64,000 nt of DNA from Takakia lepidozioides (GCA_030704615.1 CM060734.1:57040001-57104000), one strand, 5' to 3'; positions 3,290 to 63,461 are shown, numbered from the stretch's first letter. Notes: generated by a model from the sequence alone, not told the origin. Numbers and translations are program-made.

Positions 3290-3575
3290 GAAGCCTCACA
3301 CTGACATATGATGACTTGTCACAAGCAACCTTGGGGATGGCATCATGGGTCTACTGTTTAAGGGGTCTCTTGCTGATGGAATAGCAATCATAGTGCGCAG
3401 GATACAGAGTGGAGTGCTCAAGAAGAAGCATGTCAATGGTGTAGAGCTGCAGGCACTATTTAGAGTTCAGTACACAAACTCTTTGGCATTACGGAGTCAT
3501 GTCAAAGCTAAACAGTCGACTCTTCTTGTTTATGGCTACGTGGTTAATGGTTCCCTTGAGCAGGCACTACATGGT
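3290..3575 (+). pseudogene. Receptor-like kinase fragment (subdomains I-V), degenerate
   Basis: TYDDLSQAT..FKGSLADGIAIIVRRI..LLVYGYVVNGSLEQALHG followed by a GTGAGT donor. Confidence 0.6.
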
Positions 3576-3729
3576 GAGTCTTTCAATTTGCCTTGGTTTT
3601 TTTGTGTGATTTGCATGAGGACTTCCCCTCCTCTTCTACTACCTTGTGTCGATAGAGGCTTTTTTGTGGGCCTCCCCATATGGTTCTTGGCCATCCAAGG
3701 TCTCCCATTTCAGCTGACACATTTAGGAA

Positions 3730-4009
3730 GTTGCACTCCCCTGGAGTTTGTCTCCCTTTCATTTGTGTTCTCAAGGCATGTGCCAGCCTGGCAGCCCTGG
3801 AAAAGGGCAGAGAGGTCCATGCTGCCATTGAAAGCTGGAATCGTGCCAACTATCATTCTGGACACTACTCTGGTGGACATATATGCCAAGTGTGGGAGCA
3901 TGAAGGATGCAAAGGCAATGTTCAACAGTATGGCTGAGCGAAATTTAGTCTCTTGGAATGTGATGATCGCAGGGTCTGCCCAGCATGGATGTGGGATTGA
4001 GGCATTGGA
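3730..4009 (+). pseudogene. PLS-type PPR fragment, frameshifted
   Basis: FICVLKACASLAALEKGREVHAAI / TLVDIYAKCGSMKDAKAMFNSMAERNLVSWNVMIAGSAQHGCGIEALE. Confidence 0.85.
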
Positions 4010-4335
<326 letters not shown>

Positions 4336-6199: not shown

Positions 6200-7768
6200 C
6201 GTTCTCTTTTTCTTTGGGTGGCTACAAATTACTTGACTAAATGGATAAAAGTCTGTCATTTGGTTACCAAGGATTCTGATTCAGTAGCACAAGTCTTCTT
6301 TGAGAAGATTGTGATGAGGCATGGTTGTCCTCTTAAAATCCTTACTGATAATGGCCGGGAATTTTGCAATGACCTCTTGAATATCATATGCTTTAATTTT
6401 GGGATCAAGCATGTGACTACAGCCCCCTACCATCCTCAAACCAATGGTTTGACGGAGCGTTTCAATCAGACTTTCTGCCGAATGTTGGAAAAGAATGGCG
6501 AGATTGCAAGGGAGTGAGACATCTTCATTCCTCCTTTGGTCTTCGCTTATCGCACTGCTGTTCATGCTAGCACGAGGAAATCTTCTTTTGAGTTGTTTTA
6601 TAGTAGACGATGTCTCTCATTTGCATCATATTCCACTGATTTCCACTGTTTCTGAGCCCGCGGACTTGACTGATTTTGTAGAGAGTCCATGCTAGGCACA
6701 TGGTTTCGGTTAATGAAGCTAAGGCCAACATTGTTTTTGCTCAAGCAGTATAGGCTAGGAATTTTAACAAATGAGTTAAGTACACAGATCACTTCCATGA
6801 GAAACAGACTGTGTGCCCGTCTTCAACATGGACCGCATGCATGCAAATCTAAGGGGAAGATTGACGATCCTTATTTGTTGTACAAGTTGCTTCGTGAGAG
6901 ACGTGCTTTGATTTTGCCGCATGGACACAACACGGAAGCACATGAGGAGCCAGTGACACTTTTAGATTTGATTCATTCGGAGCTGGTTTTTGACTTGACA
7001 TGCATCAATGTTGAGGGGCGATAGGTGGAACTCACTCCTCGTGGTACAGATGTTATGGAGGCTTCGGTTTTATAGGAGTCTTTTTTGAGACTTAGACCGA
7101 TTTTCATTTTCAGATTGTAGTAGTTGTTTTGTAATTTAGTTTTTAGACTTAACATGAAGTTCCAACTTGTCCATACATGTAAGGTTTTCCTTTGCATGGG
7201 TTTTGTCCCACTGGTTTTCCCATGAAAGGTTTTCCACCCTACGACGTTGGGGAACTTCATGGCGGGGTAAGATTATTATATTTTACCTCGCGGAGCTCAG
7301 ATTTTTAAGGGGGGGGAAGAAGCCTTCACATATGTGATGGCGCATGTTCTCATGGCCTGACTTTCAGCTTATTCATTACCTTCTGACAGGTTCATCCCAT
7401 GCCATTAGTATTTACGGCAGGAGACCGTTATATACAACCTGACCTGTATTTGTTTGAGGTTTATCCTAAAGCTTTGTGGCTTGCATCTGGACCTTTCATA
7501 GATTTACGGGCCAAATCTGTTTGTAATCTAGGTACCTGTGGCATGCTGCCACGTGGGGGTATTGCCTCACCCTGGGTTTTGGGTATAAGCTTGTTCCTGA
7601 CCTTGAGTCAAGGCCTTTCTTCTCGTATGTACAACCTGTACAGGCTTCTGGACGTGCTCTGTGAGCTTTGGACGTGTGTATGTTAGCTTTGCATATGTTG
7701 TATGTAGGATCTCTACATGTTCATCTCCTTTCTCGTGATGTAAAGCCCGTTCCTTCCGAGCTCTTACA
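6200..7768 (+). mobile_element. Ty3/gypsy LTR retrotransposon 3' remnant: integrase core, polypurine tract, putative 3' LTR (7333-7768)
   Basis: YLTKW..IVMRHGCPLKILTDNGREF..TTAPYHPQTNGLTERFNQT..LVFAYRT; purine tract AAGGGGGGGGAAGA near 7307-7320; TG...CA bounded segment with TATAA. Confidence 0.85.
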
Positions 7769-7930
7769 CCCCTAGTTTAATGTGTCCTTGTGAAGACGGA
7801 AAATCTCATTCAAGCACAAAACAAGCCTTCTCTTCACTAATTTTTACTTATGATATTATTTGATATGTTAATTTACTAGTTTTCTTGCACTCGGCACGGC
7901 CCTGCACGGAAGGGGCTACTGTACTGTGGA

Positions 7931-8099
7931 CACGTGGCCTTGACACACTAGATAAATACCCGTAATAATCACACTCTTATTATTATTTTAATGTTATATC
8001 ATATTATCCGAACCGTACGGACGGACACGTGGCGAATACGTACTCGCGTCATCGAGTCTTATTGTTTATAGACTGCTGTCAATGGGAGTAAGCCACGTG
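7931..8099. promoter_or_regulatory. Three G-boxes (CACGTG) upstream of the RVE-A pseudogene
   Basis: CACGTG at 7931, 8026 and 8094, two in GACACGTGGC context; conserved at 56022, 56090 and 56185. Confidence 0.6.
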
Positions 8100-8375
8100 T
8101 GCATTGTGGAGCTCTTCACCACGGTAGATTGTACATTGACTGCGAGGAGTTGAATAATTCGGGGTGATAAAAGTAGAGTAGTGTAGTTACCTGGTCTGCC
8201 GCACGTATGGTAGCGCAGCGATGGTGTTTGTGGATTGCTGCTTGCTTCCCGCCCCGAAAGCTTGGACCCGCTCTTCACCCTCACGGCAAGCTTTTCTCTT
8301 TGTGTGCAGCTTGAACGTATCCAGGATACTGAGCGTAGTCGTTTCTTCCCGACACCATTGCATATAACAGGTCAT

Positions 8376-10719
8376 ATGAATGCTCCAGGTTTGGAGATGT
8401 GAGGGGCGATGGTATCTACATCCTCTCTATCGGGCATGCCGGACATGGGGTCTGTGCAAGCAGCTGATGACAGCTCTAAGAAAATAAGGAAACCATATAC
8501 TATCACTAAGTGTAGGGGAAGCTGGACGGAGCAGGAGCATGACAAGTTCCTTGAAGCCTTACACTTGTGAGTTAGTCCCTTCTTTTTCTGTCTCTGCCAT
8601 GTGAATGTGATTACTCTTTTTGGTAAGGAAAGAGGACCAGAAGTTTTGGGTCACTCGTACTCAAGTGATAGCGACACTGGGATTCAGGTTTGATCGGGAT
8701 TGGAAAAAGATTGAGGCTTTTGTGGGTTCCAAGACTGTCATTCAGGTGCACATTCCCATGTTGTTGCCATTTTGCAAGTGATATATACCTTGCTCAGATC
8801 TTGAACCAGTTGTTGGAAATTCTCTTGTCATCAAGCCAGTCTTTGGGCCTAACTTCTTGTTAGTGAAAGAGCCTTAAGTGGAGTCCTGTACCAGTTGCAT
8901 TATTGCCGGTTGATCTCTACTACTGGTTTGTGAACAGGGGAAACCTCACTATAGGCATCTCTGAACAGGGCTTAAACGACGCAAGGGCACAAGCAACCCC
9001 TTTGCTAGTTGTTCATATAGGTAGGAACATCTAACAAGACTCAGGATTGGGTTGTGGGGTTACTTCTCAAGTGTTTGCACGCAGCTGACTTTTTGAGGAG
9101 TTTCGATTGGGTTGCAGATACGTAGTCATGCCCAAAAGTATTTTTTGAAGGTGCAGAAGAATGGCTGGAGAGCATGTACCCCCTCCACGTCCTAAGCGCA
9201 AATCTACCAATCCTTATCCTCAGAAGGCACCTAAATGTGGTATGTAGATCAAACTCATTCGGGTTGTTTTCAGTTTAGTACTTTGTTGTCATGATTAGCT
9301 TCGGAATTTGCGGGTTATTGCACAAGAGAGTTCTCAGCTAGTGAACACCCTTAGTAATACATACTATTTCGTCAAGTCCTTCAGGCAAGTTCTAATTGGT
9401 GGATGAAGGTGTGACACCCCCTTCCTCACCTAAGAGTCACTTGGATAGGGATTGTTGCCGTTCTGACGTCAAATATGGCTGTGGTATGGGCAGAACTAGG
9501 AGGGATGGGCATGATTGCTGGACGGAATTGGAGCAATAGCAGCAGTGGAAGTTCCCCAGGGAGTTGGCCCCAACAGATGCTCCCAGCTGGTCAAGTTTTG
9601 CAGGAGTCAGGTCCACGAGGTGTGACTCATTTTACCCAGAGGTGTGACTCATTTTACCCAGGTTTCTGTGGGTTGATGGTTTCTTCGTATATCTGGAAGA
9701 AGCTCCTTTGTTTAGTGGAGGTACTGGTTAATAACGAGTCTATTATCCTGGAATTATTGGCTTTGGATGGCTTTGCAGCTGCTCCTGACGCAGAGGTGTA
9801 CCATTTTATAGGCAGTGTATTTGACCCAGGCGTTTCGGGTCACCCTAGGAAGCTAAAGGAAATGTCTTCCATTGATCGAGAAACAGTACGTAGTCTCAAT
9901 CTTGTTTCTGCTTTGAATATTTATGTAGCTGCCTCTTTTAGACTAGGAGTGTGAATCTAGTGATTTGGCTGGTAACATTTCTTATTCGCTGCAGGACTAA
10001 AGTTTTGAAAGCCCATGATCAGTAGCAGGTGTGAGAGATCACTTCTGATCAACTTACACAGGCTGCACCTCAATAGGCTTGTAGATAATGGGCAGAAATT
10101 TTGTATTGACTAATTTTTCGCAACAAAGTGGTCAAAGATTGTAGAACAGTCAATCATGTTTCACGGACCTTTTGTTTCATTTGATGTACAGGTCATACTT
10201 TTGATGCGCAATCTGTCCATCAACCTTTCCAGCCCTGATTTTGAAGAACATGTAAAAGACCTTTACATATTTCTGTTTGGATGCTTATTTGTGCAGAATT
10301 GAATGCCTAAGAGCTTAAACAGTGTCATGATAGCATTAGGCTTCCAATGTTGAAATTCATTTGCTCTGAGAGCTTTGCAAGGGCTGTCTTTTCTTAGGCT
10401 GCAAGCCTCTTCAGCAAGAAGCAAGTATTGTAGAAGGTTGGTTACAGGCTTCATTGTGCATAGTTACTGAGTTCTCAGGTCTAAGAATCTCATGGATCTC
10501 ACTTCTTGCCTTTCTTCATCGTCATGGGCCCATCTCCTATCTCAAGGAAGGGCAGAGTTCTGGCGAAGTCATCAAGTCAAAGATCTCCTTTTGGTGATTG
10601 TCTTGTTGATACTTGTACATGTTGAATCAGCAGCAGTGCTAAGTAGGCCTCTTGTTTTGTTGACACAGAAACTGTTTTTGTCAGTGTATGACATATGTGG
10701 AATGGAAGCAAAGACCTGA
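8376..10719 (+). pseudogene. RVE: REVEILLE/LCL MYB (SHAQKYF) pseudogene, RVE-A
   Basis: Same exon structure as RVE-B, but with TGA at codon 9 (8400), a 2-bp deletion after VQKNG, TKCRGSW in place of TKSRESW, loss of F in PDFAE and a 22-bp tandem duplication over the exon-4 donor (9617-9660). Confidence 0.92.
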
Positions 10720-12593
10720 CAGTGTTGATGACGAGAATGGTGCCCCTGGTGCTGGTCCTCAATCTTGCTCGGTATGTTTATACTAAGTCGTTGCCAATCT
10801 GGACGTGTTTTCAATTGAAGCCCTCCTCCTAGTGGCAATGCAGCAAAATGTCCCTAGAAGGATAATTTACTCACTGCTGACAACATTTGATGCTTGTTGT
10901 GTGACATAACGACTTCATTCAGTGCTTGCTATGTCATGTCATGCTCAACAACCCAACGTTTTAAAGTCTGTTTTGAAATCTTCAACCTCACATGCAGCAG
11001 TCATAGCAGGGTGAATCTTTTGAGGTTTTCCGAGCTTGTAGGTTTCTGATTTGTTTTGCAGAGTGCATGTAGGGGGTACTTGACTGGGCGAGGTCACTCA
11101 TTTCTGTGCTGTGAATGGTACTCACAGGATGCAGGTCACATTGATCAGGGGCGATACAAGTGAACCAGAAGAGTGCAGACTTGGATCAATCCCATCAAAG
11201 GACTTTCATGTTGCAGAGGCCTTTGCACATGGCAGTGTGGATGCTCCCCCACAGCACAGATATCCCTTCGGTCGCGGAGGAGACATGGAAGTGTGATGGC
11301 GCGCGGGTCTACACTATCAAGGCCCGAGCTTACCCCCAGCTTCCCAAATCTTGGAACCAACATCTCTGGCACTGCCCCACCTCTTCGATTGCAAACACAA
11401 GCTACGGATTGGGTGCTATGCAGGGACTGGGTGTACATACGGCGTGAATTTCTGAGCCCATTTGCTTTGTCAAATCAAGATTTGTACTGAAGGCTCTCGA
11501 AATGGTTTTGTCAGGCAGAGAAGAGGCTCTTTCGCTTGGCTGTAGTGAAGAGTTGGGCGAGCGTTCCTTTTCAAAGTGCTTGTGTTCTTGTATAATATCC
11601 CAGAATGTCTGGATTTAGCCTGAAATGCTGGCTAAAGCTGCAGAGTGTGCAATATAGCTTGCGGGTTGTAGGCAACTTGAGAGGATTTCCTTCCCTCGTT
11701 GATGGAAGACAGCTCATGTAAATATTTTGGTGTAGATCATACTCATCAGGTCATTTCTGTGTTTGGGCAGTACTGTAGTCTCAGCACGGCTGTGTGACCA
11801 GCTTGGGGCTGGCAAGGAGCTCAGGGAGGAGCAAGAATGGGACTGGTCCAGCAGCTAGTGGTCCAGGCCTTTTTGTTAGAAACCATGGAATGCCGTTACT
11901 GCAATGATGGTGCAAGATGATGATGATGGTCTGCGAAGGTAGATACCATATCCAACTCTTCTCTGTAATCTGACGTTCAAAACTTATGTCACTAGCAGCC
12001 TCTGAGCACCAGCCTGACCAACACCAGGGTGCTGACAAGAAAATGATGGCCCCATGCTTGCAGTTGGAAAGACAAGTTTCTTCCAGAGCAGGCGGATCCT
12101 TATGGTTCACCACTAGGTTCATGGTACAAGTTGCACTTCATGCTCTGTTCACCTGTAGATTCTTGCAGGCTTCTGACTTGTACTTGTACATGACCATTTT
12201 CTGGAGCGGTGCCGCGGTGGGTTCTTCTCCTGTAAGATTTGAACCGAGCAGGGTCACCTAGGCCTTACGAAGAACCAAAAACTCCGTTCCCTGATATTAC
12301 AGGGCTAGTACAGTAATCTGTTTTCAAAAATACTCAACGAAGCGATATTATGGGTATCAGAATACAAATGCATAGACCTAATCGAGGACAGGCATACTGA
12401 ATAAACTCTTGCTTTAAGAAATCGCGAATCCACCCAAGATCCCCTCGTAGGATGCCAGATGACGCAGGGTCCGTTCAGCATCTGACTCAGGTAGCTGGCT
12501 TCCCATGCACCTTCACCATTATGGTCTTCACGCAGGCTGTATAACTATTAACGTGTGGCAGGCGACCTCCGACATCCTCCGCCTCTAACATAG

Positions 12594-12790
12594 AACTCCG
12601 AGGCTGGTAGCCCGAAAATCGGGGAACGCCCGCGGGCTGGGGCCTTCTGTTTCGTGAAGCACCGTTCGGATTTTTCTTGTCAAGCTGGGAGGATCTTACG
12701 TGATTCGTAAGATGCGTCCGACGCTGCAGCCTATTTTCCGAGTGGGGAGGGGTGTCAAATAACAAAGAAAAAATCTGAACGGTGCTTTAC
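12594..12790. mobile_element. 197-bp non-autonomous insertion with asymmetric inverted repeats and hairpins
   Basis: Absent from the paralogous copy near 51490; IRs at 12654-12678 and 12765-12790; hairpin ATCTTACG-TGATT-CGTAAGAT. Confidence 0.7.
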
Positions 12791-15700
12791 AGTGTGTCCA
12801 AAGTGCCCTTATCACTCCGGTGGATAGGTGTCCAGATCAAATGCTCTCACTTTAACCCCTAAAGGACAAGGGCCGATTTTTGCCAAGACCTCAAAAACTG
12901 GACCCTGGTCCTCTAAAACATTTATATCTGGAGATTTACTAAGGCCCTGTAAAACTAACCGTTGGAATATACTCTCGACTACCCTACCTACGACCACAAA
13001 AATCCCTGTCTAAATCCAACCAGCAGATCCAAAGAATATAATGTCGAAAGTGGTGCCAAAAAAAAAAACATGAAGTAAATAGGGAAAAAAAAAGTGCTTT
13101 TTCTATCGAATTTCCCATCTGCAAAGGCTCAGAATTTTGTGTGGCCTCGTCGTAATGAGGCTGGTCACGCGACCGTCAGGCCGGCTCATTAATATAGGAG
13201 CAAACTACCTTCATGCGTCAAGGACTTAGAATTTTTTTGGCATATGAATTTTACAACTACCTCCATGTAGGTAATTTTAGGATTTTCTACATGAAGGGAG
13301 TTGCAAAACCAAGCTGGTCTACCTGCATGAGAGTAGTTGCAGCCTCTCATTTTAAGATAATAGGGTCTTCAATGGGCACGTGCGATGTGGCCGGTGGGCC
13401 CCGCGCACGGACGCCCGGCTCCCCAGCACCCCGCCCGCCCCGCCCGCCGCTGAGCGCATTCACCCAGCCGCGGGGCGCAGCTACAGCAACCGCGCCCGCG
13501 CCCCCGTCCGCCGCGCGGCCAGTCCCCTGCCCATGAGTCGGTTGCCTAGCAGTCTGCCAGTCCGCCAGTCCGCTGCTGGCCAGTCCCCTGCCATCCAGTC
13601 CGATGACGGCGCAGGATCGCCACCGTCCATTCCCATAACCCATCCGAGCCCTCCATTTTTAGGGCTGCGAAAATGGCAATGATCTTCCCACCAATCCCGG
13701 CCGCTCTCTATTGACGGTTGTTTGTTGTCCGATGTTGCGGTAGGCGTTTCCATGCACGCGACTGTTTCCTCTTTTGCGCGCGATGTTCATGATGATGATG
13801 AAGCGTGTGCTTGAACATGAGAAGACTGTCTGGGCACTACAGCCACCATCGTGCATATGCTTCCACTATTTTTGCCTTTTTGTTGTGCTTTCGGGAACCT
13901 TCGTTTTATGGTTTGATTCTATGTCATAAATATGGAAAATCCGACATCTGTCGTCGATAACGTCCTCTGCTTGTGATCCGTCATGATACGTTTAGCCCCT
14001 TCGTACTGCATCCCTCATGAGAGCCTTCACAAGTTTAGTTCATTAAGGAACCCATGGGTAACATGGGCGCGAAAATGGTGGAAGCGTATACACATGGGGG
14101 CGTGTATTGCAGATTTCGTATCGGACGATGGGACTGTTTATGTGACCAAGTATAGCGGCTTGCATCCGTCGTGCATAAGTTTGTGGAAAGGGTGGAGAAT
14201 CTGAAGAAACCCAGCTTTGTGATGGATCCACATGGTATTATATAAGGGATGGCAGCACAAAAAAGCATTCGAGTCGTCACGGAACACCATCCAGTCGTAA
14301 GGTCCTCAAACATCCACACGCACCTGCTGAATGCAGATGTCTGAGCCACGACGGGAGATATCTGACACAATTGCATCTGCAAATGCGCGTGGATGTTTGA
14401 GGTCCGTTGTGTCGCGAGTCTTTCACAGTGGGTCCGTTGGCCCGTCAGTGCTCCGGATATTCCCCTTATCGCGTGCATAACAGTCAGTTTGGAGGCGGTC
14501 TACTGGAAGTCGGTCTGTTGGGATAGCAGTCTGATGCCCTTGTGAATTTGTCAGTCTGTTGTGTCGGAAGTCTGTTGCACTAAGTCTGTTTGACTTCTTA
14601 TTTTCCCTCCGGTCAGTCTTTTGGCTTGTTCTCCCGCAGTCTGGCGAAACGTCCGTCTGCTGGACAGTTCTCCTCTATGGATATCAGTCTGTTGGACTGT
14701 GCATGCATCAGTATGTTGTGTCGCGAGTCTATTCGCAATGGTGTGTTCGACTTTCCTTTCTCCCCTTACTCTCTTTTGTCTTCATTCGCTGGCAGGGAAG
14801 TGCCTCCATATGAAGCCGCTTCGCTCAGCAAAGCGAATAGTCCGCTGGACTGGCGGTCCGTGGACTCTCGCCCGATGGGAAATGAGTCTGCTGCTTGCGA
14901 GGAGCGTGATGAATTTAGTACGATCCGTTCGTTCGGTGGACGATTCAATGCGATGACGGCGGATAGTTGGCCGCCTGTGAAATCGCGCCACGTTGGCAGT
15001 GCCATGCCCGCTTTCCCCCTTCTCACTTCTACTTTCTCCATTCTCTTCGCGCCTGTTTCTTCGCACAGTTTTGCCACTGCTTTGTTTTTCCTCTTTGCGT
15101 TTCCATCACCGTAACGAAAGACGACCGTTCTTCCCCAGGTATGGAGAGTCGCGGTGAGCCGCGAAGCGTCCGCAAACACGCTCGCCTTCGTACAACTCGA
15201 AGTTAATCACTCGGTGAGGTTCTCACTTGCTGGCGGGTTTCCATTCCATTCTGTGTCCTCTTCTTGCTTAGGGTGAGTCTTTTCATAGGACTTCTATTGT
15301 CGCTCTGTCGCTCATTGTCCTTGCCCTTCGTTTCATTCTGCAGCGATGGAGGATGCTTGTGAAAAGGTGGAGCGGACTGGTTGGATTTATGCACCAAACC
15401 AGACTGAAGAAGGAACGAAGGTATTGGTACTCACCAGACGAGTTGATCATAAAATAGTGGAAGCATTTGTAGACCTCCACGCCCGGAAGCCCAAAACTCG
15501 AATTGGCAGAAGGACAAGCTCTTCTGTCCCTTCTGTTAAGAGGTAATCAAGGACAAAATCCAACTAAATCGGCATTGTGTTGACACGGGTTGCAAGGACA
15601 CTGTTGCAATGATTCCACGGGATTTCAAGCCTTGGCCGATACTGAAAGAAATGTCGATTGTCAAAGAGGCCACAATGCGCTTGCGCGGATCAGTGCTTGA

Positions 15701-16839
15701 CCCCGCACTTTGGAATTAGACGAAGTGCGCGCACGGTATGGCGTCCATTGTGGTGGCCCGTCAATGGAGGATTTGCAAGTGCAGGGAACGTTGGACGCTC
15801 CCAAAAACGTAAACTGAGTGATGGGGCCCAAAAAAAGGAGAGGCAAAAAAAGAGAAGGCTGCAAGGTCTGCTCGCGAGGCAAGGGCAAAATCCACGCAAC
15901 AGACTGAACCCCGTCCTGGGCGGCAGACCCACACCATCAGTACTGATACTGAAAGTGAATCTGCTCAGGGCCTGGAAGGGGTGACAAGTCCAGTGGACAT
16001 TGACTTGCCTGACCAGACTCGGCAGCAGACTCACACAAATATCGCGACCCATGCCATCGGTTTAGGGTCAAAACCAAAAACTCAACAGAGCACTGAAGGG
16101 CCAGTCTGCCCTGGCACATTGCGCCTCGTTGACTTTGGGCTTTTCCCACCAGAGTGCCCACCAATTGGGGATCCAGACTTCTTCCGTTATTTCTACAGAG
16201 TTGCCCAGTCAGGTCTGCTACGCACATTAATCCGACAGGCGGAACAGAACTGGTTGAACAGCTTTGAAGATGAAGATGACGATGATGAAGTAGAGGAGGT
16301 AATGGTCAGTCTGACCGCCCAGTCTGTTCTCTGTGCTGTTTGAGTCCATCATCGGGGTCACGTTGCCTATTCAGTCTGGTCAGTCCCCTGCGTTCTCTCC
16401 TCAGTCCGCTGGCTCAGTCCGCTCGTCAGTTAGTCTGTTTTATATCGCTGCATTACTTACTGAGTCCGTTTGTCAGTCCGCTGGTCCAGTCCACTGGTAT
16501 AGTCTACTAGTTGCCTCCACCCTACGTACGCACGTTACAGTCTGCTGGTCTGTGAGTCCAGTCCGCTGCATGAGGTGAATATAGAGTCCACGTCCATGTT
16601 CCTGACGTCGAAGTTCTCTGCCGTGTACCAGGATGAACGTGTTTCTATTCGTAGGGCCATTCAGGCTTGGCGGATACCTAGCAATGATGCTCCTTTACAA
16701 GCGACTGCAGTGCGTGCGGAAGTGGACCGCGTGCGAGAGTACATATTATTGAAGTATCATGGGTCATCTGCTGCTATAGCGGCATTACATATTGAAGACG
16801 CGTCGGGGGGGAATGCGTCTGGGACAGCCGAGTCTGCCA

Positions 16840-16975
16840 TCCAGCAGACTCCCATTCAGCAGGCCGTCATCCAGCAGACTCCCGTTCAGCAGCCTGTCAT
16901 CCAGCAGACTCCAAGAGAGCAGACTCCCAACGAGCAGCCTGTCATCCTGCAGACTCCTCTCCAGGAGCCCATCAT
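16840..16975 (+). repeat. 30-bp tandem repeat encoding (V/A)IQQTPxQQP
   Basis: About 4 copies of GTCATCCAGCAGACTCCCGTTCAGCAGCCT-like units. Confidence 0.85.
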
Positions 16976-19900
16976 GCAGCCCATGCCAATGGGAAGTCTT
17001 GTCATCCAACAGACTGGACCAGCAGACTGCCTTTCTCTCACATAGCACGACGTTTTTGCAGTTTGGCGATCGCCATCACCGGTAATTCGACCCGGAGCTG
17101 AAGACCTCACACTTCCCCGGCTTAGGGTGGGAGAAATTAATCCCCATTTGGATTGGCATAATGAGCTCCACCGGATTGTTGCGGACCGCCGGTGGTCATT
17201 TGTACCCTTTCATTATTCCATGGAGTTTTCTATTGAGGAAGCCAACCATGTTCTAGAAGCCGCCTCTGCTGTTGCCATTGAAGCCACAAGCGACCAAAAT
17301 GCGCCGCCTCTACTTGTGCAGCTGATTCTCATGGATGACCCACGGCCTGAAGACCTCAGACATATGCCTATGGCACATCCAATTTTTGGGGTGCGAAGAG
17401 CACTTGTTCGGATTGACTGAGGAGGACTTTGAGCGCATGGCAGCTTCCTTCCTACAACACATGGATGCAATTTGGCAATTTCCGCTCATACAACAAGTTG
17501 ATGAAGGATCTGCATAGTTTGAGGATGGACTTACTCCATGGAACAGACCATTCACAGAAGTTTGTGGTGGATGACGCATTGCACTGGTTTGCATTGGTGA
17601 TGGAGCGAGCAGTATTCGACATTGTTTTGCAGAATCCCAATGTCTTCAAAGTCCTGTGGTGTGGGATCCCAACTGAAGACCGCATCGGCGCCATTGCTCA
17701 TCTCGATGGAGCATGCCTGTGCCGGCAAATCAAGGACATTGGCCTCGTCGGAAATCTCTTGGAAGGTAAAATGTTATGGGCAACTTTCGTGTTTCAGCTC
17801 AATTTCTTTTGCCAACTTTTTTACAAGTTCACATTTGCATAAACATGTGTTGCAGCGAGTTGATCTGGGAGACAAGCAAGTGCAGGCTGCTTTCGACTCT
17901 TTTGCCAGAGGTGCAAGGGACCTTGTCCTGGCTTTACAAGGAGTTCGGGAGACTGTCCAGCAGACTGGCCACAAGAATGTCGAACAACATATTCCCCACG
18001 ACACATGTGGGCAGACTGCCCAAGTGCTGGAGACCGAGCATGTGCACCAGACCGTCCCGGGTAATAGGCCGGATCACTCCCAGCAGACTGCCCCGCACAC
18101 ACATACTCAGTATGTGCAAACAGTACTGAGCGGGCAGCGAACTTTGCAGACTTTGCAGCAGACCGGAGAACAGACCGGCCAACAGACTGCCCCTCAGCCG
18201 ACTGTGCAGCAGACCAGCGAACATGGCCACCAGACTGCCCCTCAGCAAACTGTACAGCAGATCGACAATCCAGCCAGCAGATTGCCCCTCAGCAGACCGT
18301 GCAGCAGACCGACGAATCCAGCCAGCAGATTGCCCTCAGCAGACTGTGCAGCACACTGGCGAACCTACTCAGCAGATGGCCGAGCAGACTATCCAGGAGA
18401 CTAACAGCCAGTCTGTTCCCTGGATTGTGCAACAGACTCGGATGCACTGGCCTCACCGGGACCCTGTGGACGAATTTCTGCTGAGTTCCCAACAACATGT
18501 TTTTGGATCTGCCAGTGAGTGTTTTGACCGAGTCCACTTTTCCCCCAGGCACATTCACTGACGACGTCATCAGGTCACCGGTAAAGCATTCTTATCCAGC
18601 TCCCCGTGGCCTGCCTTCTATGACCTTCCAGGTTAGTCCCGTTTTCGTGCGCTCAGTGGCGAAAGCCATAGATGAGTCTTACGTGATGACCGAACTCAAT
18701 CTGGGAACGCAAAACCGTATCATAGATCTTACAGAAGAGTCTGAGGAAGCAATTGCCGGTGGGTCTTCCATACATGTTCTTGATGTTTCCCAAGTCCATG
18801 GAGATCCGAACACCCAGCCGGCTGTCCACCAGACTGACCAGCACACTGAACAGTGGACACATGGAAGGACTGCCGAGCAACGTGTGGCGGGGCAGCATAC
18901 TGTCTTCATTGATGAGCAGACTGAACCGCAGACTAACCAGCAGACTGCACAGGTCACAGATGGAAGGACTGACCAGGATGGCTCGGAGCGGCAGACTGCA
19001 CAGCTCAGCTTTGACTGCACAGTTCAGATTGCACGGCCTGACCAGCACACTGCACACTCCACAGAGGGAAGGACTGACGACCAACCTGCCACCGAGCACA
19101 TTGCCCACATTGAGGAAAAGACTGAACCGTAGAGTTGCCAGCAGACTGCACAGTTCACAGACGAAGAACCGGCGGCCGAGCAGACTGCCCACATTGAGCA
19201 ACAGACTGAACATGCTGGCAGGCACACTGACAAGGAACCACATGCGGCGCAGATACCGTCTGGTATAGCGCTGGATTACATGGAGTCTGCTCCCTCACCC
19301 CTTGGGCAGGTTGTGCCATTTCCTCTTTCAGCACTGTTGTTTATGTTTTAGCACATTGTGAAATTGGACTAATTCGACATTTTGCTCGGTATCCTCACAG
19401 GATGTTCGTCCCTCCGTCGGCAGACTGTCTACTTCTGTGGACATGACATCTTCCGCCCATGCTGCAAACGTGGGATCAACAGCCAAGAAAGGTGTGGGGG
19501 TGAGCACGCCCCTCGATGCGCGGGTCAGTTCTATGCATGCGACCCACGAAGCTGCAAAGACAGGTCCAGCAAGTGTAAACAAACCTGCTGACAAGCCTCT
19601 GTTGCGAAGTAGGGCAGCAGCGCTACGTTTGTCTGCTCTATCCAGCCCGCCTACAGCTGTCCCTGCTTCCCATGGGAGAGGCAAAGCCAAGAAGCCGACT
19701 ATCGTGGACCATGCTGAGGAGGTCGAGGAGGGTCCGAGTACCAAGAGACCGGCGAAGAAAAAGTCTGGCGTCTTTATGAACAAGAACCACAAGTTGGCCT
19801 TGGACATGGACAAAGATGTGGGTCGTTTCCTGGAGCAGCACAGGTGAGTACTGTGCTCAGTCTCCTCGTCTGTCTTTGTCGTTAAGTGCTTTGCGCTTTG

Positions 19901-20439
19901 TTGTGGTCAGTCTGCTGCTGGTTTCATCATTGTCTGTTGTGGTTAGTCTTGTCAGTCTGATGAATTGTTTAGCTTGTAGAGTGTTTGGTACCATGTTGAC
20001 GTCAGTCTGTTCAGTACATGAGGCTTCCCGAAGGATGGTCTGCTCTGTGCAGGATGGGTGCTCGGTTTGGCAAAGCACATGCTCTGCACGTGAAGGCAGG
20101 TAATTCCATGCTGATGTTTTTTGAAGGGGACCCACGGTTTGAATGCGGACTGTCGCCGGATGACATAAAGGTGGTCCAGAAGGTTGAGTCGGAGTGCACA
20201 GATAGACTCCTGGAGCTGTGGTGTCGATTCTATGAGAAGTCGGTTGAGGCTGCGTTCATCAACACTATTGCTGTTCTTCCAACGTCGACGTGGACGGTGT
20301 TGAAGTCATTGGGGGTGGGGCAACATGAAAGCCTTCTGGAGGTCTTGAAAGGTTGCCTCAGCACTGAACGACTGGGCAAGGACTTGAAAGAGTGCGAATT
20401 CATTTTGGTGCCAATTGGGGACGAGTAAGAACTCTTCTG

Positions 20440-20710
20440 AGTCTGCTGAGACTGTCTCCTGAGTCATAGTCTGGTTTCGCAGTGTCGTCTTGACTCTGAG
20501 CGATTAAGTTGACCTCTGTATTTGTGCAGTGGACTGGGTTTGAAGATTGAGTCTGCTGAGTGGTCGGTCTGCTGAGACTGTCTCCTGAGTCATAGTCTGG
20601 TTTCGCAGTGTCGTCTTGACTCTGAGCGATTAACTTGACCTCTGTATTTGTGCAGTGGACTGGGTTTGAAGATTGAGTCTGCTGAGTGCTGAGTCTGCTG
20701 AGTGGTCGGT
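20440..20710 (+). repeat. Two-copy intronic tandem duplication (~125-bp unit)
   Basis: TCTGCTGAGACTGTCTCCTGAGTCATAGTCTGG...GAAGATTGAGTCTGCTGAGTG occurs twice. Confidence 0.9.
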
Positions 20711-21610
20711 TTGCTGAGTGTCAGTCTGCCCATCATGATTGTGCAATGACGCCATGTTGTTTGATACCATTGCAGGGGGCACTGGAGTGTTTGTATCATC
20801 GACCTCCGCAAGGGCTGTTACACTCACCTGAACTCTATCAGGGACTTGCATAAATGTCCCTTTGTTCTAGGGTGGATTCGGAAGCTTCATGCGCAGTGCT
20901 TAGGGTACTCGATGGACTCACCAGAATGGCATGAGATTGTCCAAGCATTTCAGTTCCACGCGCCTGATGTGCCCCAGCAACCATTCAGCTGGGAGTGTGG
21001 CTTTTATGTCATGTCATTCATTCAAGTGTTTTATGAGTGGATAAAAGTTAGAGCAAATGTCTCCAAGACTGCAAAGCCAGAGAGATGAACACCTTTCACG
21101 AAGGACTGGTTTACTTTCAAGTTTGCACTTGGGCAGCGAATGCAGTGTGCCCAGTATATCGTGCGGGGGTTGGACAATGTAGAGAAACTGCTCTCATGAG
21201 TATGATGTACTTGTCATGTGAAGTCTATGTACCGAAATAAAAAATGCGAGTCTTTTCGCGTACTATTCCAGTGGTGAGCATTTTTGTGTACTGTGGGTGC
21301 TGGCATGTTTTGTAATGTTGTCACTAAACTCAATGGACACAATGGTGTCAATTTTTCCATGCACTGTGCACCCGAGTCTGCTGAGCTTGAATGTGCGAGC
21401 AGTACGCTGCCGAGGCTAGGACTGTTGGGTCTGGTACCTAGTCTGGGAGGCACCATGTCCATGAGTCCGCTGGGACGCTGGATTGGCATAAGTTGCAGGG
21501 ATGAGGTGGAAGTGTGGTGAGCAGACTTTTGGAGTGGGCAGCAGACTGACCAGCAGACTGGCTTACTGGCGCTCGCAGTCTGTTGACTGTGACTCTGTTG
21601 GGTCTTCTTC

Positions 21611-21770
21611 GTGACACCTCCACGACATGAAACCTTGTCTCTTTTCGAGGAATTGCAGACTTATATTGTCTTCTCCGTGACACCTACACGACGTGAAACC
21701 TTGTCTGTTTTCGAGGCATTGCAGACTTATATTGTCTTCTTCGTGACATCTACACGACCTGAAACCTTGC
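21611..21770. repeat. ~66-bp tandem repeat (about 2.5 copies) at the transposase 3' end
   Basis: GTGACACCT..ACGAC..GAAACCTTGTCT..TTCGAGG..TTGCAGACTTATATTGTCTTCT repeated. Confidence 0.85.
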
Positions 21771-24700
21771 AAATTTTCGAGTATATATGTGCTGCAGGTG
21801 CAGGTGCAGACACCCTCTTGCTGGTTCTCCGCAAAACCCTAGGCCGGGTTTTCCAGGCCTCCACGAAATCTCGTCTCATTTTCAGAGACATGTTGTCGTT
21901 GTCGTTCAGAGGACGAAAAGTCTTCGCTGTCGCAGGGTGCAACATTCCAGCCGCACTTTTCGCCAGGATATCAACGAGCTGCCCTCTGCACATATGAAGA
22001 GCAGATCGGGCATGTGCCTCCAGGTATTTGTCATCACCTACAATGCGAAGTATGTCCGCGAATTCTTGTTCCAATGAGGCTAAGACCTGCAGAGGTGCCT
22101 CGTCGTAGGGGAAGTCGTCCGGAGGATGTCTTTCCATGAACTGATTGGATTCGTCGATGCCGCCGGCACCATTGCCCAAGAGCAAGTTAGGTAATCCTCC
22201 ATGAATGGTTCCCAGCGCCGTGCCACAAGCGCGCACAAGGAGGCCATCCTGCAGGTCAGGGTGAAGCATCTTCAGGACACGGACCTGATGCTTGCATAAG
22301 TTTCCCTTCATTGCCCATGGGCACGTGCAACAACCCCAATCGCAATCAGGATTGTAAACAATGTATGTTGTGTCGGGGTGGTTGCTGCTGAGAACGTAGG
22401 CTGGTTCACCAGGACCCAAGGGAAGAGTAACACTCTCAGCAGGAATGTCTCGTGCCGCAAGTATAGAACTGGATATGTACTTTTCGTGTTTGTCATTTCT
22501 TATGAACCCGTGGGTCTTCAAATGGATTGCGTACCAGTAGTGTGTTAGCACACGGCCAGTGAGTTCCCATATAAGCCAGTCCACTCTACGACCACTCATC
22601 TTGTCTTTCCCCATGGCAAGTCTTGCCTTCAGATTTCCATGGTATGCCTCAAAGCTTGCGTTTGTGTCTTGGCTCGCATGAGGGACATTGCGGGCTACTA
22701 TACACCACATTGCTATTTTGGGCTTCCAGTACTGTTCGATATAGTCAAGAAATTCATGTCCTTTGGGTATTTTGACCTCATACGACGGATTCTCCTTGCA
22801 ACCCACCGAAGCGCTCTTTTCTCGTTGCGTGGTCCCCCTCTACAGTACATGAGGTCTCCCATATCCTTCAACAAGTTTACAGCGGTCACCGGATCCTTTG
22901 TTTTCTTGCATAATTGCTTCACCCATGCCTTGCGGACATGCCAAAGGCAGAGGAAAATGAGTACTCCTTCAAAAACAATTCTGCACAACACACATGGTAC
23001 ACATTAGAGTCTTGGGATCGGACTGCAATGGTGGACTGCCGGAGTGGACTGTAACAGCGACCTGTATCAGCGGGCAGAGCCACTGGACTCGCCCAGTGGA
23101 CAGTACAATGCCATGACGTTGATGTGCTGGAATAACCCCATTGGACTACCCAGTGGACTTCCCCATTGGACTTCCCCTAGCTAGGACTGGGGCAGCGGAC
23201 TGCCCAGGGACTGCCGAGTGGACTTGGCAGCGGACGGCCGACCCCAGGGACTGCTGAGTGGACTTGGCAGCGGACTTGCCAGGGGACTGATGACCGGACT
23301 TGACAGCGGACTACTAGTGGACTGCTGCAATGGACTTCGACAATGGACCGATGCTGTGGACCAACAGACTTACCGAATAGCGTTGATTTCTGCTTCGGCA
23401 TCGTCCACAATGAAGGCATTGGGTCACCAGCTCGGCAAATCTGCGAGGAGTGAATCGCGCAAGGCTCTCATCCACGGAACCAGGTCTCTTGTCCGATTCC
23501 TCGCGGATAGGATATAGACAACTGGTATACCGTTCAACCACTCGTCGAAGACCATCAACGTGTACAATGAGAACTGTTGGAATGCACAATGTAAGATGGT
23601 CAGAGCATGCAAATTCCGCTCAATTCTGCACGAGAAGACTTCATAAGAGTGATGAGGTCTGTAGCGGTTCACAATGGGTCTGCCTCTCGGTCTTCCGCAA
23701 CGTACACAACCCCAAACATACAGAAAGGGGCACACCAAATATTATGTGAATGTTGCATGGTACTATGCTATCATGCTCGTACAAGTCCATGGAATCGTTC
23801 GAATAGTACCTTGTCATGATTTGTCCCAAAGGTTGCATCACATGCAACGATACGGTCATGTCCTAGTTCCAGCATTCGTCGTTTCTGCCACGGAGTCTGT
23901 ATGCCAATAGTGAATGTCAAATCTCCATCAAAATGCTCGAATGTTGGTTCTAATTTCTCCTCTTGATAGAAAAAAACGGACGCAGGATTCTGGTCTCTCC
24001 ACATGTGCACACTCTCTGCATCATCGGCGTGCTTTTTGAAGGTTTGCCACGCACGTTTCTCGGCAAGGTTGCGAACATCTTGCTCCAACAAGAAATCATC
24101 GCGGGTCCATGCATCGCCCAAGCCGGTGTTGTTCATCACGTGCTCTTTATGCTCCATCATGATTTGGGCGACCGACAGGCCTCGGCACAAACACTCGACG
24201 ACCCAGGCTTTCAATTCCTCGCTAATGTGTGGTGCATAGGCGTGGCGGGTGTTCCTGAACTCTGCGGACTTCCCATGCGAGGGTTTCCCTTGCGCATCTG
24301 TATACTCCATGTTGTTGTAGTACGTGAGGACACAGATGTCAGGGGCGAGATAGCATTGCTGGACCTTGAAACAACATTGGCAACCACGTTTGTAAGACTT
24401 TCCATACTCCGACTTCTTTCTCCTTGGGCCTTTATGAGGGCAAGATGTTCCAGCACCCACAAGAGGTCCTCCACGCTTCTGTTTTGGATCCTCCACTATT
24501 GCCTTGTTGGTGCGCTTGTCATCAGGACCGTAGCAGCATTGATACCTGGACAGAAAATTCTAAAATCGATATCCAACGACTTGAGGAAGCATAAAATCAA
24601 AGAACTCGTGAAACAAAAAATGGCAACAGACATGCAATGAAACGTCAAAAGGACTGAGGATGGTGCACACATAATACTGGACAGAAATGTGTTGGCTCTG

Positions 24701-24993
24701 GGTGCTTTTCGCGAGCCGGGTTCCACTTTAGAATGGACATTCACCCAAAACTGAGTGGGGTAGTCCTCCAAACTCTCCTCTCCCAGGACGAAGTCACCAA
24801 CTCTATCCCAAGGTATGCAGGCCTTTTCAACATTCACTCGCACACCCATAAACCCATATTGCGTCTCACTCTTCCAATGGAGATCCTTTATGTTGAAGGG
24901 TCCTGGTTTTGCTGTTTGCAAACATTGTCGAAAAGGCCGTATAAGCGGGCTTTCCGTGATCAGTATATCATCGGGTTTTGCTTCCACGTCCAT
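21727..24993 (-). pseudogene. MULE transposase with SWIM zinc finger (At1g60560/At4g13970-like), 4 exons: 24993-24671, 24545-23810, 23573-23374, 22980-21727
   Basis: IPWDRVGDFVLGE, YQCCYGPDD, KRGCQCCF, FTIGIQTPWQ, ACDATFGTN, FIVDDAEAEINAIR, LCLWHVRKAW, DTNASFEAYH, SWIM CTCPWAMKGNLCKH; canonical GT-AG junctions; one TGA (23424-23426) and one frameshift near 22765. Confidence 0.92.
23025..23360. repeat. Transposase intron built largely of degenerate 11-12-bp GTGGACT(T)G(C/G)C units
   Basis: Many GGACT-containing units in tandem. Confidence 0.8.
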
Positions 24994-26199
24994 GCCCTAT
25001 ACAGTACAAAGGACACGCTTCTGAACATGCAAGAAACGTGCCGCAGTACAAGACACGATCGACAACGTGCCAGGAGAACAGTGCGCACGTTCGCGGCTGC
25101 TGGCAAGTGGCAGGCGGCAGGGATGCAGGTTTGAATTGCAGCCCTAAAAATGGAGGGCTCGGATGGGTTATGGGAATGGACGGTGGCGATCATGCGCCGT
25201 CATCGGACTGGATGGCAGGGGACTGGCCAGCGGACTGGCGGACTGGCAGACTGCTGGGCAGCCGACTGGCCAGCAGCGGACTGGCAGACTGGAGGGCAGC
25301 GGACTCATGGGCGGGGGACTGGCCGCGCGGCGGACGGGGGCGCGGGCGCGGTTGCTGCAGCCGCGCCTGCGGCGGGCGGGGCGGGCGGGGTGCTGGGGAG
25401 CCGGGCGTCCGTGCGCGGGGCCCACCGGCCACATCGCACGTGCCCATTGAAGACCCTATTATCTTAAAATGAGAGGCTTTGCGTAGTTGCATACCACATC
25501 CGTGGAGGTAATTACAGTAAGCGCCATCCACCGGAACTGATCTACCACCAGACCACAACCTCCTCCATGCCAAGGGTTTGACGTTTTATTGATATATAAG
25601 AGAAACAGGGGAATAGGGATCCTTTTAATGTAGCGGGGCCGCTGTCAGGTCCTGTCCCCTCTGCACCCTGCGGCCTCATTACGACGAGGCCACACAAAAT
25701 TCTGAGGCATCTGCAAACTGGTCTGACATGACACTCTCCATAATCTGGTGGCCTGTCATATAAGACGCCTTCCCTGCAAATTTCATCTTTTTCTGACACA
25801 ATCTCACGTGGGCTGCTTTGTATGCTAAAAATTGGGGGGTCAAATTTGGGGTCTTCCTTCGGGCAGGCAAAAAGGTTTGTTCAGAAAATTGAGGAAACAT
25901 TTTGAGCCGTTCATTTGGCAATCGCTCCAGTGGGAATGTTTGTGGGTGGGTATGGCTTTTCCGCAAAAACATTTCGGGCCAATCTGAGTCTCATACTAGG
26001 TCTTTTTACCCCCTTCCCATGAGACTTGCAATTGCACCTATGTGGGCCTATAATTTTTGGGCAGTAGCCCTCTCTTGTGGAGGGTTTTAGGGGGTGCCTC
26101 ATCCTACCCGTCCCTAAATTGATTAGGCCTCCACCCCTCCCAAGGCATGTCCACTCTGTTCACCTCGCCGGGCATTTTGGGAAGCCGCGGGGGTTTCTC

Positions 26200-57235: not shown

Positions 57236-60200
57236 TCAAACTCGCTGTTTCTGTACATTGCTCCGGTTCCTTGAGTAAAGAGAGGAGACTAAAAGCAAGA
57301 AGACACTGACCAAAAGGGTCCATAGGCCAACCATCCAATACTTGGGACTGATGAGCGCTGGTAGTTCTCGCACCTTGTTCAGTACGCCTGCTCGCTTTGG
57401 GTGATCAACCCTACTTAAATGAACAATATGGCCTCCAAAACCCTTTTGAATAAGGGGGACTTGAGGTGAAGGATACTCTCTACTGCTACCGGGCGTTGCT
57501 CTTGTACTGTCATGTTTCGTGATCTGCACTTTCTCACTTGCATCACTGTTGTCTTTGTCTGCCTTGATAGCCATCTCTAACCTGGATTGAGGCTTCTCAC
57601 ACCCTTGCTTCACATGGTGCAAGTAGAGAGCTTCATTGAGGGTTTTCACACAGCTTATGCTTATGTTATCTCGCCTCTGTGCCCGGTCCTCAAGGGGCCC
57701 TAGGGTCGAAAGTTCTGGTGGCGTCGGGAAGAACTGCCAGCAGACATTGGTCATATCCTTGTTTCGCCATTCAGCCTTGTCGAAATGCCAATCGCTGACC
57801 TGGAAATGCAGCCCATAATGAAGCACACGAGGCTCCATGTTTGGGACGTAGCCGGGATACATCATAATATCATCTCTCCTCCTGTGCCTCAAATTGATCT
57901 GCAAAACAAAGTCACCTTCTGTCATACTCCACTAGTTTCTTTCTGGGTTCATAGAATTAAAAAAATCTCTCAAAATTTTCTATGCAGAAAGTCTGCACAT
58001 CTGATCGCCACGACATTCCTTTCACAAAGATCACAAGAAATCTTTGTGCATGTGAGACATACATTGGTGAGCAAATCTCATACCATCTTTGGATATTTTA
58101 CAGTCGTACCACATACAATCTCAAAATCTGCGAGCTGTCCTTGGGTAGCCACTTGCATATTGGCAAAAGACTACACATGTTGGCGTACGTCGATGAATGA
58201 TAGCAGATTGAAAGAAAGTTTTTGAAAAGTTCTCGTGACATGAAAATGTCTCTTTAAGACCTGGAAACAACCAGAGTACCCCTGCTCTCATAATTACCTC
58301 AGCAGAACCAAACGAGTAGCCATACATCTCACTGATCCAGCCCTTCCCAAAGATATCGCCTGTAATATTGGTTGGCCAATGCAGTTTGTCAGCTCGAACC
58401 TCCTCCGTCTTATGGAGCCAAAGGGGCGCCAGCGCACGTAGGTCGTCAATATGAATTATTATAACCCCACCCACTTTGTCACATGATTCAGGGTGTCGTG
58501 TATGGAGCTTTGCCAGAATGTTGTCGCAACCGATCAAATAGCTGCAAAACCCCTCCACCAACGGGTCATGTATCTGCCTCTTTACACTCAGTCTCATTGT
58601 CGTGTGCCCCTCGTCCCTTCCCTCCTCCTTTTCCTTAACACTTTGGTTGGGTGGGAGAAATGGACAGATCACCATAGATCCTTCTCTCTCTCTCTCTCTC
58701 TCTTCCCTTTGTGTTCCGCTCAAACTGGGCGCAGGGTCAATGGCCACAAGGCAACAGCAAGGCTACATTCTCTCTCCCTCTCTCTGTTAAGTCCTGGCGG
58801 AAAAGGGTAGAACAGATTTTCAAGTATCTGAATATTAGCCCAGAAGAATTCACCCTGCTAGATGAAGCTACCTGGAGGTTGCTATGTCTAATACCATGTC
58901 GGATGCCCCAAGACTGTCCAAAGAAATGAATTTAGGCCCAAACCATCCTTGAACGTGTCTCCAGTCTGTGACATGGGTGAGGACCTTAAGGATGACCTAA
59001 CTACCGTCGGCACTAGACTGACATTTAAACTCTGGGCGGGGAGCCTTCCTTCGAACAAGAAACAGATGCAGAGAGTAAAAGAAGATTGTAATTGCCCGAT
59101 ATGCGGGCAACCTGAAGACAACATCCATTTTGTGATACATTGTCGAGTGTAATCTCACCAGAGAGTGACCCTCCTTCAGGAATATCAAGAACATTGTCCC
59201 CACACCTCTGTTCACCAAATTAGAAAATCTTGAGGCTGGGCCTAAAGCCCTGGCCCTGTTGGGGTCTAATTGTTGGGACAGCAAGTTGATGCTTGTGTGA
59301 AGGGCTTTCTAGAGTATACCAGAAAACCAGAACAAAATTTCTTCATAATGGTCGGTCACGGGAGTGAGCCCCTCACAAAGGTATAGTATCTGTTCCCTTT
59401 TGTTCCACCCAAACTGCCACGGGGTCTTTGGCTACAAGGCTATGGCAAATGTCTTGTGAGTACATGCTCTCTCTCTCTCTTGCCTTAAACCATGGTAGTT
59501 GGGCCATTTGTTCTTTCTCTGATACTCCTCCCCATTTTCTCCCTTCTGCTCTGGCCAAACTGGGCAACCATAAAACAACAAGGACATTCTAAGAGGAAAA
59601 CACTCTCCCTTCTTTGTGGGGGGGAAATGAATGTCCCTGTCTTTGTCTTCCAAAATGTTGCTGAAGTATACTCTATGCACATTCACATGGAGTGTTAACC
59701 CCCTTTTGATTCCCCTCACTCGATGTTCTTCAATGTCAAATAAGCAAAGAGGTCGAAGAACTCACTCATAGGGAGCTGAGACAGGATGTCCTTGCTCTGC
59801 ACCAAATTCCCAGGGCGTGATAGGTCCTCGCAAAATCATGTCCGCGTCAAGGATCACCACATACTCCACATCAATTTGGACATGGTTCAGCCAATGGAGC
59901 ACCGCTGCTGGCTTGTTGATGGCTGGATACCTGCACAAACATCAGTCCAAGAGCGAAAAAGAGAGGGGGATGAAGGGAGGGGAAGGGAACTAGGTTCCTG
60001 GAACTGCAAGCACATAAATCTTGTCTGCAGAAGCATATCCACCTATTGCATGCATCACTGAGAAAGATTCATTATAATATGCATCTCGAGAAGCTGGCCA
60101 GAGCAAGACCGACGACTCATCCAAAGCAAGACAGACTGTGGGAAGGAAAACAAAGAGCAATAGCTACTGCAAAATGAGAGTAGACACAGCAGAGAAGGTT

Positions 60201-62739: not shown

Positions 62740-63461
62740 CTGCCATACACACACCCTATCCATTTCTCAAACCAAGGGAATTCCATAACCTGAAAAAGTA
62801 ACTTCAATGCTAGGTTCTCATTCTCTCTCTCTCTCTCTCTTTCCTTGAATGTGGATATGTTCATTGTAACAACACTCAAGAACTGCCTGATCCCTCTGGC
62901 TCTTTCTCCATCCTTGAGCATACATGACATTTCATGGCAAACTAATAGATGATATCTTGTGCTAGGCCCTGTCGCAGCAGCATAATAGAGTATATGTGTA
63001 CACCTTCTACATGATCCGGTCAATGTACATTGCTCTCTTGGCTGGTCTACTGTAGCCAATGCCTTAGGAAACCTGAAAATGAAAGGCTTGAGGAATTTTT
63101 TTCTCTCTCTCTCTTTCCTTGAATGTTGCTAAGATCATTATAGATAGCATTCAAGAATTGCCTAATCCCGTTATTCTGTTCAGATTTTTTTTGTCTACAA
63201 AGGAACGGGAAATTGGATAACGACTAGGGTGACTCATTAGGGTTCACCCTAGAGGTCTTAACCTAAAGCTGCTGCCCTATATGGTTAGTAAGCTTGGCCA
63301 CTCTTCTCATTTGGAAGAGGAGCAGGCAAGAGCTGAAGGAGCTGACTATACTATGGCTACAAGCAAGGTATCCATTCAGACTCCTTCAACACTGTGATGG
63401 GCTGCTTAGTATGGCAACACAAAGTGTGTTGACACAATGAGGAAGTTACATGGACTTGACT

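Follow-up and report, generated by a model that had tools for sequence, protein, structure and literature searches.

A 64,000-nt stretch of DNA from the moss Takakia lepidozioides (GCA_030704615.1 CM060734.1:57040001-57104000, one strand; hereafter the window) very probably contains one dead 12.1-kb copy of a Mutator-like DNA transposon, the transposase of which belongs to a clade shared with SWIM genes of angiosperms and may represent a cousin lineage of those genes. Taken by itself, the element is unremarkable: a dead transposon of a type already known, a Mutator-like element (MULE) with a C48 protease gene. Its relatives are of wider interest: a MULE clade still mobile in liverworts, ferns and conifers seems to have given rise, by taming of its transposases, to two angiosperm gene families that lack a known function and are conserved from Amborella to eudicots. 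The transposase combines an N-terminal zinc finger, a MULE-type catalytic core with the residues D, D and E (DDE core) and a probable SWIM finger, and its gene lies tail to tail with a spliced gene ending in a Ulp1/SENP-type C48 domain. The angiosperm genes are referred to below as host genes.

The Mutator-type element spans positions 13341-25478 and is bounded by long terminal inverted repeats (TIRs) of about 330-340 bp. The outer arms of the TIRs (13341-13450 and 25369-25478) comprise 110 nt with 100% complementarity and are prolonged by further arms to about 13668 on the left and 25138 on the right; in a direct alignment, the two ends are distinguished by a small number of substitutions and by three indels of 22, 38 and 3 nt. 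Mutator-like elements make 9-bp target duplications, and a 9-bp target-site duplication (TSD), GTAGTTGCA, was found on both sides, within the 9-11 bp range used to recognize MULEs. The left copy is flush with the TIR, and the right copy begins after 5 bp, TTTGC, past the TIR end at 25478. A chance recurrence of the 9-mer no more than a few bases from its expected place has a probability of about 1e-4, and we therefore regard the TSD as real though not flush. The initial annotation had proposed an element bounded by TIRs and a TSD, and these ends bear it out, with the right TSD copy offset by 5 bp. Together, the long TIRs and the 9-bp duplication mark a cut-and-paste insertion.

The coding blocks of the transposase gene were delimited by three-frame reading together with tblastn using full-length relatives, and the splice sites were read off the sequence (Table 1). 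Introns 2 and 3 have canonical GT..AG sites. The gene carries one in-frame TGA at 23426-23424 (in the context SW-stop-PNAF), at a position where relatives have R, K, E or M, and one frameshift between about 22833 and 22758 in exon 4. The frameshift is a lesion rather than an intron, because a relative on an environmental contig (L003; ENA assembly ERZ24794498, NODE_250, 6914-17230), whose transposase is 41-50% identical to that of the window, reads the same stretch as a single open reading frame (ORF). The four exons, the single stop and the single frameshift that had been given for this gene are correct; two further changes, absent from the earlier account, came from an alignment of 28 relatives over exon 2, in which a near-invariant His of the N-terminal zinc finger is replaced by Tyr (TAT) in the window and a near-invariant Cys of the same finger by Ser.

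All searches, alignments and trees of the window transposase used single exon pieces rather than the joined protein. A full HMMER search with a 359-aa piece of the last exon returned 634 proteins with E values up to 0.001. The closest matches are metagenome or read-assembly fragments, with up to 44% identity in the search and 53% over the 210 columns kept for the tree. The named long matches come from the fern Adiantum and from the liverwort Riccia sorocarpa, the latter with many divergent copies, and Taxus chinensis contributes 18 near-identical members in one cluster. Also among the matches is the AT1G60560 orthogroup. It includes P0283, a protein that carries the label 'like AT1G60560', and its listed members range from Magnolia and Nelumbo to Lamiales, with 71-88% identity to the Perilla query. 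A second angiosperm group extends from Amborella and Magnolia to eudicots and monocots, and several of its members are named 'zinc ion binding', which we take to be TAIR's name for At4g13970; judged by this shared name, with no Arabidopsis row among the matches, the second family is probably of the At4g13970 type. Among the matches listed, the host genes are present with one or two rows per species and are 62-88% identical to the query across the listed angiosperms.

The homology between the window and the host genes is collinear and takes in, in this order, the IPxxRVxxFxxGE motif at the N-terminus, the zinc finger, the DDE core and the SWIM finger, and tblastn of three proteins (P0074, P0283 and P0077) matches all four window exons. 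The catalytic D, D and E align in the window, the mobile relatives and both host families. Kinship with both AT1G60560 and At4g13970 had been suggested from N-terminal motifs; for AT1G60560 it is supported by the match of the last-exon piece to the orthogroup at E 2e-20 and by alignment of the named N-terminal motifs in exons 1 and 2, and for At4g13970 the link is the name.

Domain content sets this family apart. Among the 67 matches of at least 250 aa, the Pfam MULE domain (PF10551) was found in 12 and the ZSWIM1-3 RNaseH-like domain (PF21056) in 11, and neither the FAR1 domain (PF03101) nor the MuDR DNA-binding domain (PF03108) was detected in any of the 67 or in the window pieces. No MURA, FAR1, MUSTANG or Kaonashi members occur in the best 150 of the 634 matches. 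By domain content, the transposase family would therefore be a MULE clade apart from MURA and FAR1, in agreement with the earlier impression that it resembles the angiosperm SWIM genes more than either; the trees described below were built without MURA, FAR1 and MUSTANG sequences.

For intron comparison, exact gene models were rebuilt from genomic loci. The Hibiscus AT1G60560-like gene has exons of 266/652/200/245/791 nt and the Amborella gene of the second family exons of 275/652/200/245/... nt, both with intron phases 2, 0, 2, 1; the Riccia mobile-type gene has exons of 236/697/200/269/425/651 nt, and its first four introns have the same phases. All three window introns match host-gene introns in both position and phase: the first precedes Y[WQ]C, the second comes after the residues that follow DATFG, and the third interrupts the Arg codon of ..IR. 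The window, Hibiscus, Amborella and Riccia genes all have an exon 3 of exactly 200 nt. These common positions indicate that the window, its mobile relatives and the host genes descend from one intron-bearing ancestor. A fourth intron (PKI/x) is kept by both host families and Riccia and is absent in the window and L003, where the frame is continuous. Because exons 2-4 have identical sizes in the two host families (652/200/245), these families are old paralogues.

The window copy is like the AT1G60560-type and 'zinc ion binding' genes in its collinear homology, its three introns, its 200-nt exon 3 and its DDE residues, whereas the host genes are conserved and TIR-less and the window copy is TIR-bounded and broken. 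At the two host loci compared (L001 3001-5614 and L006 2001-9674), both families keep the aligned D, D and E and the SWIM finger, and no flanking TIRs were found. On these grounds, namely its TIRs and lesions as opposed to host loci without flanking TIRs, we assign the window element to the mobile relatives rather than to a host family.

The last-exon tree (IQ-TREE, LG+C20, 58 rows, 210 columns, no outgroup), run with the host-family relatives and without MURA, FAR1, MUSTANG and Kaonashi, places the window in a clade of 13 rows, all of them fragments (99/96). The two host families and a Phoenix protein (P0076) form one clade (100/98), and the multi-copy Taxus family is the sister of this host clade (98/83), with the window in a different clade. 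The initial annotation had gone further and proposed that the element may be a recently active member of the lineage that gave rise, by taming, to the AT1G60560/At4g13970 genes. We consider this improbable, also in the form of a direct sister lineage, although several observations speak for it: an approximately unbiased (AU) test does not reject a clade of the window clade plus the host genes (p 0.176), the host genes share all three window introns, the TIRs are identical over their outer 110 nt, the flanks are more strongly depleted in CpG than the element, and the lesions that break the ORF are few. Yet it is the multi-copy Taxus family, not the window, that the maximum-likelihood tree joins to the host genes, and the window and L003 are without intron 4. 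Since that intron is kept in both host families and Riccia, the host genes would descend from a lineage that retained it. The stop, the frameshift and the two changed invariant zinc-finger residues of this copy also argue against recent activity. Of the earlier proposal, the kinship holds and the source role is not supported, with the AU result as a reservation.

On the best reading of the tree and of the missing intron 4, the moss lineage may thus be a cousin of the tamed genes and not their source. Besides the window transposase, its MULE clade comprises two strongly conserved, TIR-less angiosperm families and genes present in multiple copies in a liverwort, in ferns and in a conifer; the angiosperm genes would be tamed transposases of the window's clade, and the window lineage a side branch that lost intron 4 and was not the donor. 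An intact copy elsewhere would have to supply the transposase, which would bind the TIRs.

Several points weigh against the reading of the element as a dead MULE of a cousin lineage. The right TSD copy stands 5 bp away from the TIR end, and no second copy of the element or of any of its pieces was found within the 64-kb window. The window pieces alone remain below the Pfam threshold for MULE, and the SWIM domain (PF04434) reaches 17.9 bits against a cut-off of 19.6, so that the MULE classification leans on the relatives. The last-exon tree lacks an outgroup and has a weak backbone (47/76), a single clade uniting the window clade and the host genes is not rejected by the AU test, and the exon-2 tree resolves the host clade (100/99) and is otherwise a polytomy. 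The missing Pfam MULE match can be attributed to the splitting of the domain by an intron and the stop; PF10551 scores up to 59 bits in collinear relatives, with the D, D and E aligned in the window, and the SWIM pattern CxC...CxH is present in the window and nearly invariant across the family alignment. A structure model of exon 2 has a mean predicted local distance difference test (pLDDT) score of 65, with the zinc-finger part under 50, and Foldseek of this model against the PDB gave no match below E 0.3.

The opposite polarity, in which the 'transposase' is a host SWIM gene captured in the manner of a Pack-MULE and the angiosperm genes are the original state, is very unlikely: in its favour, gene capture by MULEs is known, and the ancient host genes have retained the DDE residues, but the relatives score on the Pfam MULE transposase model, the gene is the sole transposase candidate in two distantly related TIR-bounded elements (the window element and L003), many copies, divergent or nearly identical, are present in Riccia and Taxus, and the motif layout DxTFG ... 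DD ... TNxxxExxHxxLK is that of the catalytic core of MULE transposases.

Facing the transposase gene is a spliced gene that ends in a C48 protease domain. The frame 20765-21085 matches Peptidase_C48 (PF02902) with 47.2 bits and E 3e-12 over profile positions 95-184 of 217; the match was marginal with a shorter piece and became clear with the longer frame from 20765. Among known structures, this piece matches SENP2 (1tgz, E 4e-4) and Ulp1 of yeast (1euv), and its look-alikes in the atlas are plant C48 clusters. The preceding exon alone has no Pfam match, and its assignment comes from its position and from the motif order ...ILVPI.. / HW. The active-site His, Gln and Cys are kept, and the catalytic Asp (LDS in SENP2, VDS in Ulp1) reads LNS with the codon AAC, so that the His-Asp-Cys triad is broken by an Asp-to-Asn change. 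Further upstream, a possible C2HC finger near 15520-15600 is broken by a stop at 15537-15539. Because the protease gene ends at 21088 on the plus strand and the transposase gene at 21727 on the minus strand, the two genes are convergent. A convergent, spliced C48-protease gene had been called at this place, and the Pfam match, the intron with its GT donor and the facing gene ends confirm it. At 21602-21769, a 66-bp unit is repeated in tandem (2.5 copies, 92% matches), in an array that overlaps both the short spacer between the convergent genes and the transposase frame at its 3' end.

Table 1. Features of the element and its insertion site, by position in the window
Feature	Position	Strand	Details
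Left TSD, GTAGTTGCA	13332-13340	.	directly abuts the left TIR
Left TIR, about 328 nt	13341-13668	+	holds subterminal GC[AG]GACT words in reverse orientation
Upstream passenger region	15200-19847	+	Q-Q-T-rich open frames, with Q-Q-T encoded by the word CAGCAGACT; no Pfam match
Upstream exon, probably N-terminal half of the C48 domain	about 20018-20425	+	ends ...FILVPIGD, GT donor
126-bp tandem repeat, 2.1 copies	20440-20702	+	in the protease-gene intron; word in reverse orientation
Last exon of the Ulp1/SENP-like gene	20765-21088	+	open frame from 20765, motif from about 20777, stop 21086-21088
Transposase exon 4 (last)	22980-21727	-	catalytic E (FEAYH), SWIM finger (CCTCPWAMKGNLCKH), stop 21729-21727
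Transposase intron 3, phase 2	22981-23373	-	holds a word array; donor CG/GTAAGT, acceptor TGCAG/A
Transposase exon 3, exactly 200 nt	23573-23374	-	second catalytic D (IVDDAE), in-frame TGA
Transposase intron 2, phase 0	between exons 2 and 3	-	donor AAG/GTACTA, acceptor AACAG/TTC
Transposase exon 2, 736 nt	24545-23810	-	zinc-finger motifs YxCxYGP and RGCxCxF, GIQTxWQ, first catalytic D (DATFG)
Transposase intron 1, phase 2	acceptor at 24546/24545	-	AG acceptor, ..TCCAG/G
Transposase exon 1	24993 to about 24682	-	motif IPWDRVGDFVLGE; ATG 24993-24991; donor somewhere in 24655-24682
Right TIR, about 341 nt	25138-25478	-	
Five extra bases, TTTGC	25479-25483	.	from right TIR end to duplication
Right TSD, GTAGTTGCA	25484-25492	.	

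Angiosperm C48-MULEs, or Kaonashi (KI) MULEs, reportedly described by Hoen et al. in 2006, are like the window element in being MULEs with a second, Peptidase_C48 (Ulp1-like) gene beside the transposase inside the TIRs; in contrast, the window transposase clade has no MuDR or FAR1 N-terminal domain, and the host is a non-seed plant. C48-carrying MULEs are known and scattered over the MULE tree, some of them with TIRs, according to Joly-Lopez et al. 2016 (PMC4948706), which also gives MUSTANG and FHY3/FAR1 as tamed MULE transposases. The host genes of this study would be like MUSTANG and FHY3/FAR1 as a MULE transposase turned into a conserved angiosperm gene, but they would stem from a different MULE clade, set apart by the domain content given above. 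In the literature that we searched, no paper was found that calls AT1G60560 or At4g13970 tamed transposases; the two genes are mentioned there only in two papers on unrelated matters, and both are also absent from the supplements of PMC5715367. If the proposed origin is true, an old exaptation would be added beside MUSTANG and FHY3/FAR1; with the DDE residues and the SWIM finger kept in both host families, DNA binding, and perhaps DNA cleavage, could then serve as a starting hypothesis for mutant studies of the host genes.

The pairing of transposase and C48 gene is not fixed in the clade, because L003 carries other passenger ORFs. L003 has TIRs of about 330 bp, the right one cut by the contig end, and lacks introns 3 and 4; its transposase ORF is uninterrupted across the stretch of the window's frameshift. 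The convergent passenger ORFs of L003 (304 and 476 aa) lack Pfam matches, a detectable C48 domain and similarity to the window's passenger region. A tblastx comparison of the left 8.4 kb of the window element with the compared loci L002-L005 found nothing, and at the Riccia locus (L002) no TIRs were found, the inverted repeats there being AT microsatellites only.

The element is rich in a short word, GC[AG]GACT, with 58 copies, whereas shuffled sequence gives 3.2 +/- 1.6 and the remaining 51.9 kb of the window contains 10. The word, often in the form CAGCAGACT, lies in the subterminal parts of the TIRs in mirrored orientation, in tandem arrays within introns and in the passenger open frames, where it keeps to one codon phase and codes for Q-T. 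It is densest at 16340-19340, 20340-20840, 21340-21840, 22840-23340 and 25220-25300 and is absent from the transposase exons; in L003 a different word, CATGTTAC, is enriched. The VANDAL/VANC system (Hosaka et al. 2017, PMC5735166) likewise has a short element-specific word in dense tandem arrays of non-coding parts, whereas the window word is also found in phase inside the passenger frames and in the TIRs. The words could equally be candidate subterminal binding sites of the transposase. The initial annotation had suggested that the deSUMOylase could counter silencing; in this copy its catalytic Asp is altered. As a long shot, the passenger protein of intact members might act as a self-addressed anti-silencing device, in which the repeat and zinc-finger part would be drawn to GC[AG]GACT and the Ulp1-type protease would strip SUMO from silencing factors at the element. 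If true, such a device would parallel the VANC system but work through a protease, and it would have existed already in bryophytes.

Judged from its sequence, this copy is dead: with the stop, the frameshift, the two zinc-finger changes and the Asp-to-Asn change of the protease, neither protein can be made intact, and the recent activity suggested earlier does not apply to it. The observed/expected ratio of CpG is 0.73 in the element and 0.42 in the rest of the window, and the G+C content is 0.52 in the element and 0.45 in its surroundings. The weaker CpG depletion and the identical outer TIRs fit a fairly recent insertion. The His-to-Tyr (TAT) and Asp-to-Asn (AAC) changes are both consistent with single C-to-T or G-to-A transitions, as is the TGA stop if the ancestral codon was CGA, and such transitions would fit the decay of methylated DNA.

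About 180 bp outside each end of the element lies one arm of a perfect 34-nt inverted repeat (13128-13161 and 25673-25706), of which no further copies were found within the window. As these arms would be about 360 bp apart without the insertion, the transposon seems to have landed inside a small foldback unit, similar to a miniature inverted-repeat transposable element. Host-type ORFs outside the element are located at 3345-4097, 57236-58747 and 62475-63059; they include one ORF with pentatricopeptide repeats (PPR) and weak matches to hydroxyproline O-arabinosyltransferase (23.5 and 22.8 bits, cut-off 23.9). The PPR and hydroxyproline O-arabinosyltransferase-like ORFs fit a land-plant genome.

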